This document shows positions 2,645-38,817 of a stretch of DNA of 64,000 nt, piece after piece. Below the pieces are notes generated by a model, which saw nothing but the letters and a program-made list of their open reading frames with translations, did no database searches and was not told the DNA's origin. Every line of letters begins with the position of its first letter. Position 1 is the stretch's first letter. The stretch lies in the sequence record NC_042013.1; one strand, given 5' to 3'. A program made the position numbers and the translations under genes.

Positions 2645-4513
2645 ATGACTGAAATCAAAAAGAAAACAGACTACCAACATATTCGACTACGAGTCCCTAT
2701 GTATCTTGGTTCACCTGATCCCCATACACAACAAATCATTTCCTATGACAACGGCCAGCCTATTCTTGCAGAGATGACGTGGGTTCCTGCTCTTTACACA
2801 GGATTTCGTGAAATTATTGATAACGCTCTTGACGAGGTTGTCGGTCACGGATTTGGTAATAGAATTGACATCACCTATAATGAAAAAGATTTGATTTTTT
2901 CTGTGAAAGATAATGGTCGTGGTATTCCTATCACTTATGATGAAGAGCATCAGATGTATGCTGCGACAATGGCTCTAACAGAACCAAAAGCAGGCCGTAA
3001 CTTTGAGGAACGCGGTGCGGTGGCTGGAACTAACGGTATCGGCGCGTCAGCGACTAACATTACGGCAGAATATTTTAATTTTGAGATTGTTCGTGATGGG
3101 AAAAAATTCAAACAGCGTTGTACCGAGGGCAACGTAGTTCTTGGTGATTATCTTCAGATTTTTGATCCAGAAATTACCAAATCAGCGTCTTCATCTTATA
3201 CGTACATCGAATATAAACCATCGCGAGAAGTTTACAAACATCGTATTCTTCCAGAACAATTCGTTAAAGATCGATTGTATGAAATTGCTGTTGCAAATCC
3301 AGATATCAAGATTAGTTACAATGGTGAAGTTATTAAGGTAAAGCTTCGTCCAGAACAAAACTTGTTCCCGAACAAGAAGCCTATCATTATTGAACATCAT
3401 AATGAAAATATGAGAGTTAAGTTTTGGCTATTACCTGAATGGTCTAAAGAAAATGAATTTATGACGACTATCGTTAATAACATTAATGCGTTTAACGGTG
3501 GTGTTCATATGGAAACCTTTAGACGTTCTTTCTTGACGAATTTCTTAAATTCACTTACGAAGGAAAGCAAACGTCGCAAGTTGCAGCCTAATAGATCGGA
3601 CGTAACCGAAGGATTGCTGATTTATAACATCACCGTTATGAATGCTCCGAATTTCGATTCTCAGTCAAAGACTCGTCTTATCAATGAAGAGGTTGAAAAG
3701 GAACTGAAGAAGGCATTTGATGATGAGGCTCTTTATAAGAACATCATCAAGAAAAATCCTGAATGGATCGAGGCTATTTTCGAACGTTGTGCACGACGCA
3801 CTATGAAGAAAGATGCATCCGAGATTGAAAAGATTGCAAAGAAGAATAGCCGTCTGAAAATTGCAAAGCTTATGGATGCTACCGGTAAGGACCGTTCTAA
3901 ATGTATCCTTCTTCTTGGCGAGGGTGATTCGGCTATTGCAGGTGCGGCAGCTGTTCGTGATCCAGAAATTCATGGTGGCCTACCATTGCGAGGTAAGGTT
4001 TTAAACGTTACCGGCGAAGACTTGAAAAAGGTCGTCAACAATGCAGAATTGATTAATATTACTACATCATTAGGATTGGTAATCGGTCAAAAAGCTGATC
4101 GTGAAAATATGCGTTATGGTCAAGTTTACATTGCTACCGATAGTGATGAGGACGGTAAGAATATTGCAGCGTTGCTGGTTAATTTTTTCAACACTTTTTG
4201 GCCAGAACTTTTAGAAGATACTGAAAAGCCATTTTTGAATATTTTCCAAACTCCATTTATTATTATGGAAAAAGGAAAGCAACGTCAGTATGTTTATGCA
4301 CATAACTATAGTGAATTTGATCCTAAGGATTATTCTGGTTGGCAAATTATCAGAGCTAAAGGTCTTGGTACACTTGAAGAAGTGGATTGGAAGTATGCAT
4401 TGGATAATCCACTGTTGTTTCCAATTATCAAGGATGAAAATCTAAACGATACCCTTGATCTTATCTTTAATGAAAAACGCGCCGATGATCGTAAAGAATG
4501 GATCGGGATGTAA
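2645..4513 (+). CDS. Type II DNA topoisomerase, ATPase/TOPRIM subunit (T4 gp39+gp60-like)
   Basis: GHKL motifs EIIDNALDE, DNGRGIP, GTNGIG; TOPRIM EGDSA, PLRGKVLN, ATDSDEDG, KGLG. Confidence 0.95.
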   Translation: MTEIKKKTDYQHIRLRVPMYLGSPDPHTQQIISYDNGQPILAEMTWVPALYTGFREIIDNALDEVVGHGFGNRIDITYNEKDLIFSVKDNGRGIPITYDEEHQMYAATMALTEPKAGRNFEERGAVAGTNGIGASATNITAEYFNFEIVRDGKKFKQRCTEGNVVLGDYLQIFDPEITKSASSSYTYIEYKPSREVYKHRILPEQFVKDRLYEIAVANPDIKISYNGEVIKVKLRPEQNLFPNKKPIIIEHHNENMRVKFWLLPEWSKENEFMTTIVNNINAFNGGVHMETFRRSFLTNFLNSLTKESKRRKLQPNRSDVTEGLLIYNITVMNAPNFDSQSKTRLINEEVEKELKKAFDDEALYKNIIKKNPEWIEAIFERCARRTMKKDASEIEKIAKKNSRLKIAKLMDATGKDRSKCILLLGEGDSAIAGAAAVRDPEIHGGLPLRGKVLNVTGEDLKKVVNNAELINITTSLGLVIGQKADRENMRYGQVYIATDSDEDGKNIAALLVNFFNTFWPELLEDTEKPFLNIFQTPFIIMEKGKQRQYVYAHNYSEFDPKDYSGWQIIRAKGLGTLEEVDWKYALDNPLLFPIIKDENLNDTLDLIFNEKRADDRKEWIGM

Positions 4514-35613: not shown

Positions 35614-35841
35614 TCACATTCTCCAAAAATCTTGCGGTTCGTTATATTTAAAACACACATTACCATCTTGGTCTGTGAATTTCAAAATTATTCGACGGCT
35701 GTATAATTTTCGAGCGAGTTCGTATTCTCGTTCATCGAGTTCATCAACGGGGAAAAGATCACGTTCAATGATCTTTTCCACTAGATTAGTTTCTTCAGTA
35801 GAAATGTACGTTGGGATACCGACGATATCTATAAATTTCAT
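35614..35841 (-). CDS. Hypothetical protein
   Basis: ATGA overlap with the upstream gene. Confidence 0.7.
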   Translation of the reverse strand: MKFIDIVGIPTYISTEETNLVEKIIERDLFPVDELDEREYELARKLYSRRIILKFTDQDGNVCFKYNEPQDFWRM

Positions 35842-36206
35842 CTCTTGCTCTCGGTTACATAACGAACGCCTTGTTCGCGGATAACACCTGTGAGGCGCTC
35901 AAGCTCGCTAACCAATTCTTTAAATTCGCCAAGCGGAACTTCTGGGAGTTGAGCAATGATTTCGTCAATATGTGTGCGCACTGACTCAAGTGCAGAACTA
36001 CCAATAACTGCAACGGGTGCAATTGCGTCTACGGCCTGAACAGCATCATAATCAATCGCATCAAAATCAGGAACTTCATATTCTGAAAAATCTGAATTTT
36101 CCCAATCGTCAAGTTCTACATCGTAATCAACTGTTTCGATTTCTTCTTCAGGAGTAGGTTCAATGAAAAAGTCATCTTCATTAAGTTTCAAATCTTTATA
36201 ACGCAT
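35838..36206 (-). CDS. Acidic hypothetical protein
   Basis: N-terminus MRYKDLKLNE; AAGGA RBS. Confidence 0.72.
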   Translation of the reverse strand: MRYKDLKLNEDDFFIEPTPEEEIETVDYDVELDDWENSDFSEYEVPDFDAIDYDAVQAVDAIAPVAVIGSSALESVRTHIDEIIAQLPEVPLGEFKELVSELERLTGVIREQGVRYVTESKR

Positions 36207-36276
36207 TTTTTGTTCCTTTATGTCAAAACTACGACAAATAATAGGTAAAATTTATATTTTGAACGTATCATGAATG

Positions 36277-36308
36277 TATTTATTAAACCGGGAACAAACA
36301 AATAAATA
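36277..36308. promoter_or_regulatory. Back-to-back ATAAATA late-type promoters
   Basis: Minus copy 36277-36283, plus copy 36302-36308 in a divergent gap. Confidence 0.5.
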
Positions 36309-36356
36309 TTAATAAGCACAGGAATATCTTTTATCAAGTCAGGAATTAGTGAAGCA

Positions 36357-36602
36357 ATGGGTGAGGTTATTAAGACAGTCTTGGCCGTACTGAATGGTGG
36401 CGGTTCAGAAGCGGTCATAGCGTTGCTTCTTATAATTGTAGCTTACTTAGGCTATAGTAATTATAGACTGCAACAAGATTTTAGAAATAAAGACGAACGC
36501 ACCGACAAGGTGGTTGAAGACTATCATACAAGTAATAGTATCTTGACTGAAGCAATTCAACGTTTGAATCAGTTGATATCAGAAATCAAGAATAAATTAT
36601 GA
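36357..36602 (+). CDS. Small single-pass membrane protein with coiled-coil tail
   Basis: Hydrophobic AVIALLLIIVAYLGY segment, then a charged helical C-terminus. Confidence 0.7.
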   Translation: MGEVIKTVLAVLNGGGSEAVIALLLIIVAYLGYSNYRLQQDFRNKDERTDKVVEDYHTSNSILTEAIQRLNQLISEIKNKL

Positions 36603-38209
36603 TGAAATGGTTTAAGAATAAAAAAGATATTAAGAACAAAGAACTCGATGAAAAAATAAAATCGAGTACGAGTCAGCTTGTCGAAGCCGCCAACATTACT
36701 ATTAGTCTGGCAGAAGAAATTACGGATGCTTTAAAAAATAGTATTGAAGATTCTTATAAAGAATTAAGTGCTACTGTTGAAATCATACCAGACGCTATTT
36801 TTATTGTACGTCGCTCAGGTATCATTGAAAGTGCTAACTCCCAAGCAAAAAACTTATTTGGGATAGAGGAACTTCTGCCTGAAACTTCCATTTTCGATTT
36901 TATAAGCTTTAATAGTACCAAGATTAGAAATACCGAAGAATTAGAAAAAATATCTACGGTTATTAATGAAAAATTAACATTTTCATCTGATACCGATGTT
37001 CACAATATTCGTGGTAAAACCATTGATGGTAAAACTATTACGTTGAAAGTAAAAGTTAACTATTTCAAAAAATCTGATAAAATTGTCAGATATGTTGTCT
37101 TAATGGAAAATATAACGGATCGAATTGAACAAGAAAAACGATTCGTTACTCTTTATAATTATAACAATGGAATAATATCAGCTATACCACAAACATTGAT
37201 TACCGTCGACATGGCAGGGGTTATAAAAAGCATTCATAATAAAGGATCATTTATCGATATCTCTTTTATGGATAAGAACATAACAGATGCATTTGATGAA
37301 ATATTAGTAAAACAATTTCGTCATTTCAAAAAGAATCCGATGGTTTATAATAATTCACAAATACACTTTACTAAAATAATAGATGGAATCGAGAAAAACT
37401 ATACATCTAAAATTTTGGAATGTCAGTCCGAAGCCTTATTTGTTATTTCAGATATTTCGGAGATTGTAGAAACAAAAAGAGAACTAGATCAAACCGAAGA
37501 TTATTTCCGCGCTTTTGAAAAAGCATCATCAGAGGCGATGTTCATTCATATTGACGATCAATTGATTCGATGGAATGATAATATGAGAAATCTTTTTGGT
37601 TATAGTGACGAAGATATGGAAACTCTTAGACCTGTTGATTTTATTACACCTCTTGACCGTGCTAAATATTTGTCAAATATTTCTGATGATGAAAATAAAT
37701 CATATGAAATATTAATGGTCAATAAAAAAGGTGATTCTATTGAAGCTTCAGTTACTGATAACATCATTACTTGGAATGATAAAAAAGCACATATCAAAGT
37801 TATTAGAGATATTAGCGATCTTACCAACGTGAAGAAAATGCAAACGGTTAGCCGCGAGCGCTATGCGACTATTATGAATAACACTATTGACTTGGTATTC
37901 AGTCTTAGTGAAAAATTTGAATTGAAATTTTCAAACGTTACTTTTGATCAATTTGTTGGTGAAGGAAAAGTACATTCTGTTATTGATTTTATTGATAGCC
38001 GTGATTTGGCACGTTTCATCGGTGATTTCAGTAACCTTAAAGACCCATCAACCGCTATACGTATCCTAACACGTATTAACAGAACCGGTATCGTTCGTCA
38101 TATTGATATTATTGCAAATCGCATACATGATGCTGAAGGAAACTTCGTTGAGTATCAGTGTGTTGGACGTGACGTTACATATTATATTGCAAAATCTTCC
38201 AAAGAATAA
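36599..38209 (+). CDS. Multi-PAS-domain protein with no output domain
   Basis: Four PAS/PAC-like units: IIPDAIFIV..ANSQAKNLFG; AIPQTLITVD; SSEAMFIH..WNDNMRNLFGY..IRDISD; NTIDLVFSL..VGRDVT. Confidence 0.82.
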   Translation: MMKWFKNKKDIKNKELDEKIKSSTSQLVEAANITISLAEEITDALKNSIEDSYKELSATVEIIPDAIFIVRRSGIIESANSQAKNLFGIEELLPETSIFDFISFNSTKIRNTEELEKISTVINEKLTFSSDTDVHNIRGKTIDGKTITLKVKVNYFKKSDKIVRYVVLMENITDRIEQEKRFVTLYNYNNGIISAIPQTLITVDMAGVIKSIHNKGSFIDISFMDKNITDAFDEILVKQFRHFKKNPMVYNNSQIHFTKIIDGIEKNYTSKILECQSEALFVISDISEIVETKRELDQTEDYFRAFEKASSEAMFIHIDDQLIRWNDNMRNLFGYSDEDMETLRPVDFITPLDRAKYLSNISDDENKSYEILMVNKKGDSIEASVTDNIITWNDKKAHIKVIRDISDLTNVKKMQTVSRERYATIMNNTIDLVFSLSEKFELKFSNVTFDQFVGEGKVHSVIDFIDSRDLARFIGDFSNLKDPSTAIRILTRINRTGIVRHIDIIANRIHDAEGNFVEYQCVGRDVTYYIAKSSKE

Positions 38210-38232
38210 TTCATATATTTTTTAATTACTAG

Positions 38233-38267
38233 AAAGAGAAAAGCCGGATATCGCTATGATATCCGGC
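38233..38267 (-). terminator. Rho-independent terminator
   Basis: GCCGGATATC-5 nt-GATATCCGGC stem followed by TTTTCTCTTTC on the minus strand. Confidence 0.8.
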
Positions 38268-38297
38268 CATCCCTTGTTTACTGTATCCGAGGAAGGA

Positions 38298-38705
38298 TTA
38301 CAGAGAAACGTTTAGCGTAACAGAAACGTTGTTGTCAGCAGTGTCAGCGATGTCATAAACAAAGCCTTCGATGCCGTTAAGTGATTCGCCAAGGGTAGGT
38401 GAGGAATCAGTGATTTCCCAAGCGCCCTTGTGGTTGATTGCGAACTTAAGCGTGTAAACGTCAACTGCACCTGAAGCAGAAGGAATGTCAGCAGGATCAG
38501 TTTCTTCAGCAACGGTAACAGCTTCAAGAATGATTGGCTGTGCGCGTGTAGAAATGGTCTGAACGAGCTTGTCAAGACGCTTCTGTGATTCTTCGGTGAT
38601 AACGCCTGTTGCGCGGATATCGAGGGTTGTGCGGATTGTGTAAACGTCAAAACCACCACCAACGAACTGGCCAGCGCCTACCATACCATGTACTTTTTCT
38701 ACCAT
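38298..38705 (-). CDS. Probable abundant small virion protein
   Basis: Own ATAAATA (38743-38749), AGGAG RBS and terminator; codon usage appears biased to C/T-ending codons. Confidence 0.7.
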   Translation of the reverse strand: MVEKVHGMVGAGQFVGGGFDVYTIRTTLDIRATGVITEESQKRLDKLVQTISTRAQPIILEAVTVAEETDPADIPSASGAVDVYTLKFAINHKGAWEITDSSPTLGESLNGIEGFVYDIADTADNNVSVTLNVSL

Positions 38706-38817
38706 AATTAAAAACTCCTAAAGAGAATTGTTTCGTTATAATTATTTATCATATTACAACGTTGATAAAACTCATATTAGGGTATTTTGTTAATTTTTTC
38801 AATATTAATGATAAATT

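Follow-up and report, generated by a model that had tools for sequence, protein, structure and literature searches.

What does a sensor protein that ends directly behind its last sensory domain do in a lytic giant phage? This question is raised by a pair of genes of Agrobacterium phage Atu_ph07 (MF403008.1, 490,380 bp, genus Polybotosvirus). Bases 1-64000 of this genome form the stretch of DNA analyzed here (NC_042013.1, 64,000 nucleotides), hereafter called the window; between 36000 and 38600, it is 100% identical to MF403008.1. With AUZ94813 numbered as gp1, the pair consists of gp48 (36357..36602, AUZ94860.1), an open reading frame for a single-pass membrane protein of 81 amino acids (aa), and gp49 (36599..38209, AUZ94861.1), an open reading frame for a PAS protein of 536 aa. 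Both genes are on the plus strand, and the flanking genes on both sides are on the minus strand. In GenBank, the two products are named hypothetical and "multi-sensor signal transduction histidine", respectively. Table S1 of the Atu_ph07 paper gives coding sequence (CDS) 49 as a "histidine kinase" of 1,611 nucleotides (nt) in the category "Other", and the main text of that paper mentions PAS, sensor or kinase nowhere. Our analysis showed that gp49 is a real, selected four-PAS protein without output domain, and that gp48 and gp49 belong together as a conserved, late module with coupled translation, shared by a clade of jumbo phages related to T4.

Scans of gp49 against Pfam and NCBIfam gave matches to PAS families only. 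The Pfam scores were 56.7 bits for PAS_9 (cut-off 27), 41.3 for PAS, 40.5 for PAS_8 and 34.8 bits for PAS_3, and TIGR00229 matched three stretches with 83.8 bits. In these two databases, no HisKA match was found at E ≤ 1, and no GGDEF or EAL match. Across the Atu_ph07 genome, gp49 was the only PAS protein, Response_reg and GGDEF had no match, and the sole HATPase_c match in 490 kb was a topoisomerase at 2792-3079. The phage genome holds no kinase, receiver or GGDEF domain that gp49 could use. The original prediction had named one finding that would speak against it, an output domain hidden in another frame by an assembly error. None was present: the 88 nt between the gp49 stop and the convergent gp50 leave no room for it, a natural variant of the region has no indels, and the PAS-bearing homologues matched no families other than PAS. 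Thus, gp49 has no enzymatic or DNA-binding output domain, and its GenBank name "histidine kinase" is wrong and needs correcting, a practical consequence for the public annotation. These data support that gp49 must act through protein contact.

An AlphaFold2 model of gp49, computed with an alignment of 22 homologous sequences, had a mean predicted local distance difference test score of 81.7. It consisted of an N-terminal helix of 57 residues (6-62; 36614..36784), followed by four alpha/beta units joined by helices, each with a PAS fold, and a stop 11 residues past the last of them. PAS1 (residues 66-171; 36794..37111), PAS3 (residues 313-404; 37535..37810), with the top S-box match, and PAS4 (residues 432-525; 37892..38173) were also recognized by the domain scans. 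PAS2 (residues 199-285; 37193..37453) was seen only in the model, had no Pfam match, and is absent from the homologue in Sinorhizobium phage Phosso. All of these features are on the plus strand. The domain scans and the model therefore agree with the architecture first read from the sequence, four PAS units behind an N-terminal helix and no output domain. A Foldseek search with the model retrieved PpsR, DosP, FixL, LOV-HK and NifL at E values between 1e-10 and 1e-16, and HIF-ARNT too; the top solved matches were generic multi-PAS proteins. Transmembrane segment, lipobox and signal sequence were all absent from gp49.

The natural variant, 3.8% divergent, had zero indels across the region, and 33 of the 36 gp49 substitutions listed were at third codon positions. 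Purifying selection acts on gp49. Among cellular PAS proteins, the closest were 22-25% identical to it over one quarter of its length and came from unrelated lineages. Sequence searches with gp49 and with a profile of its family returned mostly cellular multi-PAS kinases and missed the phage family, and a language-model search with the N-terminal helix was uninformative.

The phage family became visible through gp48. An exhaustive HMMER search of 1.84 billion representatives, with gp48 as query, returned 49 further cluster representatives, nearly all of 78-93 aa and aligned end to end. In these proteins, the transmembrane segment is preceded by a GG hinge and followed by a basic stretch of the D-R-R-R-L type, and a shared C-terminal motif reaches to the last residue. 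Among 50,697 deposited phage genomes, the pair was found only in Atu_ph07 and Phosso (469 kb). Phosso has a gp48 homologue of 81 aa (37% identity, E 9e-20), with the gene for a 434-aa PAS protein (32% identity) immediately behind it. The Phosso pair is divergent from its neighbours, which are homologues of gp50 (61% identity) and of gp42-47. In IMG/VR, single-protein queries found nothing and a 48-sequence alignment was too diverse, but a 10-sequence alignment retrieved loci. Together with context look-ups, this gave 26 related loci (22 from IMG/VR), 10 of them on contigs of 296-608 kb.

In all 25 loci with downstream DNA, the small gene was followed by one open reading frame at a distance of -4 to +15 nt, and its product begins with a helix conserved with that of gp49. 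For 20 of the 22 partners, this second protein matched PAS families and no output family. The pair can be recognized by two motifs, both present in gp48/gp49: KIDKIIDDY..GN.TLTEALN.LK.VL.EIK.K at the C-terminus of the small protein, and S..AL..AA..T..LA.DVT..L at the start of its partner. In Atu_ph07, the two genes are translationally coupled by an ATGA stop/start overlap, read in the sequence at 36599..36602 (plus strand), and the conservation of this overlap suggests that both proteins are made together and in a fixed proportion. The PAS protein had initially been taken for an orphan; this view did not survive the finding of 49 gp48 relatives, with a partner gene adjoining in every locus with context. 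Unlinking of the two genes in relatives, which would have spoken against a common function, was not seen either in Phosso or in any metagenomic locus with context. These data support gp48 as the obligate genomic partner of gp49.

The number of PAS units in the partners varied from 0 to 4. Partners with two PAS units were 283-309 aa long, those with three 402-440 aa, and those with four 527-559 aa. Four units are the common state, from which Phosso has lost one. A gain by duplication in Atu_ph07 was considered as well and rejected, the four-PAS length class being common in many loci. The best-conserved segment of the gp49 family was the N-terminal helix, with a mean column identity of 0.44 as compared with 0.29-0.40 for the PAS units. 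Positions L27, A31, T34, A38, T42 and L45 of the helix are near-invariant, and small residues form a stripe on one of its faces. In the gp48 family, the best-conserved segment was the C-terminal helix, with 0.41.

Two partners had no PAS units behind the helix. On a Logan contig (SRR29078115; L012:1163-1620), an 82-aa membrane protein gene overlaps the gene of a 70-aa partner, which is the helix alone and aligns to the first 47 residues of gp49; a gene for phage ribosomal protein S21 lies beside them. On IMGVR_UViG_3300016717_000078 (L035:1174-2154), the partner keeps about the first 45 residues of the gp49-type helix and continues with unrelated sequence of the NUMOD3 type, known from homing endonucleases. 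NUMOD3 was the only non-PAS family among the 22 partners, and this locus may represent an endonuclease insertion or replacement within the PAS gene. The PAS-less variants suggest that the membrane protein and the helix are the working core, and the PAS units an added regulatory input.

gp48 has a calculated mass of 9.11 kDa and an isoelectric point of 5.7. A short acidic N-terminal tail is followed by the GG hinge, a transmembrane segment at about residues 15-33, a basic juxtamembrane stretch, and the conserved C-terminal helix (47-81). The top 19-residue hydropathy window reached 1.98, and the C-terminal 48 aa are charged. Across the family, the N-terminal tail is net acidic and the transmembrane segment has a Kyte-Doolittle hydropathy of 2.1-2.8. 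In each of 48 family members, the 15 residues that follow the transmembrane segment contain more lysine and arginine than those that precede it (mean 4.46 vs 0.69). By the positive-inside rule, the positively charged flank of a transmembrane segment is cytoplasmic. Because of this rule and the charge bias, gp48 is predicted to insert into the inner membrane with the N-terminus out and the C-terminus in, which would put its C-terminal helix in the cytoplasm, in the same compartment as gp49. The family could not be assigned by similarity: gp48 matched no Pfam or PHROG family, the 48 members had no consistent family in either, a word-indexed search with gp48 found only gp48 itself, and the family profile had only chance matches to PDB sequences (best E 0.007, a proteasome subunit). 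The gp48 family of about 80 aa has neither a Pfam nor a PHROG model, and the gp49 family has no PHROG.

A T4-type late-promoter motif, AATAAATATT, is found at 36301..36310 on the plus strand, 56 nt before the gp48 start codon. The identical 10-mer is found before gp53 and gp55, both virion genes, and close variants before gp20, 32, 33, 50 and 56; most genes of the window that do not encode virion proteins lack the motif. Nearly all of the related loci have nTAAATA upstream of the small gene, at a distance of up to about 60 nt (mostly 25-50 nt). The late promoter of T4 is TATAAATA. Since AATAAATATT matches it, and since a gp55-like late sigma factor (gp694) is given in Table S3 of the Atu_ph07 paper, the pair is predicted to be expressed late, not early. 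The public RNA data contained no infection transcriptome, and one root metatranscriptome contig covered gp50 only. An overlap with a small single-transmembrane gene, an orientation opposite to the neighbours and an ATAAATA-type promoter had all been proposed at the outset, and each was confirmed by the reading frames, the ATGA and AATAAATATT.

The motif is part of a divergent intergenic region of 150 nt (36207-36356), which apparently carries two late-promoter-like motifs back-to-back. The second, AATAAATACA, is at 36275..36284 on the minus strand, at -78 of gp47, which it faces; its role as a promoter is inferred. At the other end of the pair, a hairpin with an 11-bp stem (38242..38268) lies within the 88 nt between the convergent gp49 and gp50. 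It is a terminator that has a T-rich tail on the minus strand and probably works in both directions.

The pair was originally placed in a head-gene region. It does lie among virion genes, and the surroundings are better described as a cluster of virion-protein genes, CDS 31-76, delimited by mass spectrometry. The module is found between homologues of gp50 and of gp47-44, on the opposite strand, both in Phosso and in 12 loci from IMG/VR. Two further loci (L008 and L009) have it on the same strand as these homologues, and one (L013) has it directly 3' of the gp50 homologue, again on the same strand. The place of the module is old, and only its orientation has flipped. More distantly related loci have other virion proteins as neighbours; genes of 97-137 aa upstream of the module were considered there as gp50 homologues and dismissed (hhalign probability 0.04). 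Salicola phage SCTP-2 keeps homologues of gp50, gp46, gp45 and gp44, and the module is absent. At the site of the module, SCTP-2 has two unrelated small genes, and the abundant virion protein gp50 is present as two tandem paralogues (L004:7447-8363, genes 14 and 13).

Some further observations were made around the locus. The GC content over the pair (36001-38000) falls to 31.5%, compared with 37-39% on either side, despite the ancient position of the module in the clade. The neighbouring gp47 (35838-36206, 122 aa) matches only the C-terminal end of its homologues in Phosso and 12 IMG/VR relatives, which are about 440-640 aa long; although drastically shorter in Atu_ph07, its protein was nonetheless detected in virions. 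DNA nearly identical to the Atu_ph07 locus (35800-38800) was present in public metagenomes from biofilm, honey, marine sediment, freshwater, tobacco and compost, which indicates that close relatives of Atu_ph07 are widespread. One protein cluster was recorded on a contig of 497,955 bp.

How could the two proteins work together? From conservation, topology and coupled translation taken together, we infer a complex formed through the two conserved helices, with the PAS units as a variable and dispensable appendage. That gp48 and gp49 form a complex is probable. The absence of gp49 from the published list of virion proteins agrees with such a tethered sensor. With gp48 in the inner membrane, its C-terminal helix would pair in the cytoplasm with the N-terminal helix of gp49, the proposed docking site, probably as a 2:2 helical bundle. 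This pairing would tether a rod of PAS domains beneath the membrane, where they could read a cytoplasmic cue, such as a ligand or the redox or energy state. We somewhat favour the view that the PAS units are sensors rather than a pure scaffold. The signal would then travel backwards along the helices to gp48, and the output would be the membrane behaviour of gp48 itself, for example its oligomerisation or pore formation, as part of a late membrane event. For this complete reading, a membrane-tethered sensor complex that acts late and has gp48 as its own output, we see nearly as much chance of being right as of being wrong.

Lysis timing, by a holin/antiholin-like pair, is the leading candidate for the controlled process, though a doubtful one. 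In T4, the holin gene is found among late virion genes and apart from the endolysin gene, and RIII is a cytoplasmic protein that binds the holin tail. gp48 resembles a holin in general features, being small, with one transmembrane segment, a charged C-terminus and a late promoter; these features are permissive, not diagnostic. The Atu_ph07 authors found two lysozymes (gp141 and gp699) and no holin. Together, the general features, the holin missing from the published annotation and the two T4 precedents led to this proposal. In its specific form, gp48 would be the holin that the annotation lacks, or would regulate a holin, and gp49, with its several PAS domains, would serve as antiholin or co-holin in the cytoplasm. 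The pair would act as a lysis clock that sets the moment of lysis by the redox, energy, oxygen or metabolite state of the host; we consider this form less likely still.

Several results speak against a sensor that times lysis. gp48 matched no holin, spanin or other known family, and Pfam Holin_BhlA (PF10960) had no match in the Atu_ph07 genome at E ≤ 1. A BhlA cluster at rank 19 (score 0.90) of a language-model search, and weak PF10960 matches (E about 0.014) in two of the 48 family members, are weak leads. No lysozyme is annotated beside the pair in Atu_ph07, and endolysin or lysozyme was not among the top 25 families for 71 neighbouring reading frames of eight distant loci. The fixed place inside the virion-protein cluster, in either orientation, fits a structural or assembly role at least equally well. 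Electrospray ionisation tandem mass spectrometry of virions in the Atu_ph07 paper detected gp48 in band 13 (9.11 kDa, 3 unique peptides, 37% coverage); the mass agrees with that calculated for the 81-aa reading frame, and presence in virions is not needed for a holin. On the sensory side, gp49 has only two cysteines (275 and 521), neither within a LOV-type motif, and no histidine among the family positions conserved at ≥75%, so that no cofactor signature is apparent. In three distant jumbo-phage contigs (L017:8093-9388, L023:6218-9946, L034:7262-10145), rIIB/rIIA homologues are convergent to the PAS gene within about 2 kb downstream. This adjacency was rejected as a link to lysis: it is synteny of a subclade, and no rIIA or rIIB was detectable in Atu_ph07. 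Of the initial proposal, then, a sensor acting by contact with its small partner is favoured by the PAS-only architecture and the obligate pairing, and the holin nature of that partner is doubtful in view of the missing family match, the lack of an adjoining lysozyme and the detection of gp48 in virions.

A spanin role was also tried. An i-spanin has the N-terminus in, the C-terminus out and a coiled coil in the periplasm, and is followed by an o-spanin lipoprotein gene; for gp48, the charges predict the opposite orientation in 48 of 48 family members. As an i-spanin/o-spanin pair, gp48 and gp49 fail on the second product, a cytoplasmic PAS protein with neither lipobox nor signal sequence.

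The main rival to the tethered sensor is a role in the virion or its assembly, which we consider unlikely. gp48 would be a minor virion component, such as a hydrophobic protein that is ejected into a membrane or anchored there, or a membrane anchor for assembly, gp49 its non-packaged partner or chaperone, and the PAS units an interaction scaffold or an assembly checkpoint. This would explain why the published virion list contains gp48, along with the neighbours gp44, 46, 47, 50 and 53-65, and not gp49. Bulk carry-over of membrane is not obvious, because the other membrane proteins predicted by the authors (gp123, gp369-376, gp586, gp680) are all missing from that list. The position of the module between gp50 and gp47-44 homologues in Phosso, in L008/L009 and in 12 IMG/VR loci, and the promoter motif shared with gp53 and gp55, fit such a role as well. 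However, the virions had been purified with polyethylene glycol only, and the list also includes terminase, ribonucleotide reductase, RecA-like and single-stranded DNA-binding proteins, so some of its entries are non-structural, and an abundant late membrane protein could have contaminated the preparation. A transmembrane segment as hydrophobic as that of the gp48 family is unusual for virions of tailed phages, and variation in the number of PAS units, from 0 to 4, is more in keeping with a regulatory input than with a fixed part of a structure. Moreover, the module is dispensable for the virion cluster, because SCTP-2 keeps four of its genes without it. A quite unlikely alternative is that the same tethered sensor serves another late function: it could sense or exclude superinfecting phage, regulate transport or the membrane potential, or determine where assembly takes place. 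This alternative shares the structural and genomic evidence for the sensor complex, and the neighbours surveyed showed no specific tie of the module to endolysin or spanin genes; yet no positive evidence points to any particular one of these processes, and the exclusion functions of T4 are usually early, in contrast to the late promoter found here.

Two readings take gp49 without its partner. As a dominant-negative decoy, also part of the original prediction, gp49 would heterodimerise with PAS kinases or cyclases of the host and block host signalling. PAS domains commonly dimerise, and the fold search did find the heterodimeric HIF-ARNT and the multi-PAS regulator PpsR. Host takeover would be early, however, and the promoter is late; gp49 is obligately coupled to a phage membrane protein; and its conserved part is the N-terminal helix, not the PAS surface. 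It is no mimic of an Agrobacterium protein, because its nearest cellular relatives are distant, partial and from unrelated lineages, and the family extends across many uncultured phages of unknown host. A decoy is thus very improbable. gp49 could also be a decayed, functionless remnant, that is, the truncated pseudogene of a captured histidine-kinase gene, an origin that its name in GenBank could imply. The conservation data effectively refute this: about 20 homologues, down to 19-35% identity, likewise consist of PAS units only and end at the same point, the variant shows third-position substitutions and no indels, and both the translational coupling and the promoter are conserved. We give this last reading almost no weight.

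Searches of the full-text literature on PAS domains in jumbo phages, on PAS domains with holins, and on phage-encoded PAS domains did not reveal a description of the module. Sensing by PAS domains through protein contact is known; what appears to be new is that the partner is a distinct single-pass membrane protein and that the phages are lytic giants. The best structural matches of gp49, PpsR with its N-PAS/PAS1/PAS2 core (4hh2, E 8e-16), which works with AppA, and NifL-NifA (9qq6), are only 12-16% identical to it. Like gp49, they have tandem PAS domains joined by helices, and pass the signal on by binding another protein. PpsR ends in a helix-turn-helix domain and NifL in a kinase-like domain, whereas gp49 ends after its last PAS, is conserved mainly in the N-terminal helix, and has a membrane protein of 81 aa as its fixed partner. 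Membrane sensor histidine kinases have a similar order of membrane helix, cytoplasmic helix and PAS array, here split over two genes; in contrast to them, gp49 has no DHp/HisKA or HATPase_c domain, and the genome has no receiver.

Holins with a cytoplasmic antiholin are known from T4 (T with RIII) and P1 (LydA/LydB). What they share with gp48/gp49 is a small membrane protein, made late and with a charged segment in the cytoplasm, and an adjoining gene for a soluble potential binder; unlike these systems, gp48 and gp49 have no sequence or profile similarity to holin or antiholin families, and we know of no antiholin with PAS domains. Holin-like proteins of the BhlA/UviB type (PF10960) resemble gp48 in architecture only, with about 70-90 aa, an N-terminal transmembrane segment and a charged helical C-terminus. 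Among phage-encoded sensors, VqmA of vibriophage VP882 has one PAS and a helix-turn-helix domain and acts in the transcriptional control of the lysis-lysogeny switch (PMC8284805). It is, like gp49, a PAS sensor carried by a phage, and lets the phage read a chemical cue. gp49 differs from it in having four PAS units, a membrane partner and no DNA-binding domain, and in its late expression in a lytic jumbo phage.

Sensory proteins are rare in lytic phages, and the one described example we found, VqmA of VP882, acts via DNA binding. The pair would also be a compact natural example of PAS signalling backwards into a separate transmembrane helix, which may be of interest to protein engineers. If the tethered-sensor reading is true, these giant phages would gauge conditions inside the infected cell towards the end of infection, and the pair would offer a handle on how Atu_ph07 and its relatives time and execute lysis. 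Should the controlled process be lysis, the pair would for the first time show PAS domains gating a lysis switch, a new class of control over holins that is common to a clade of phages with genomes of 0.3-0.6 Mb.

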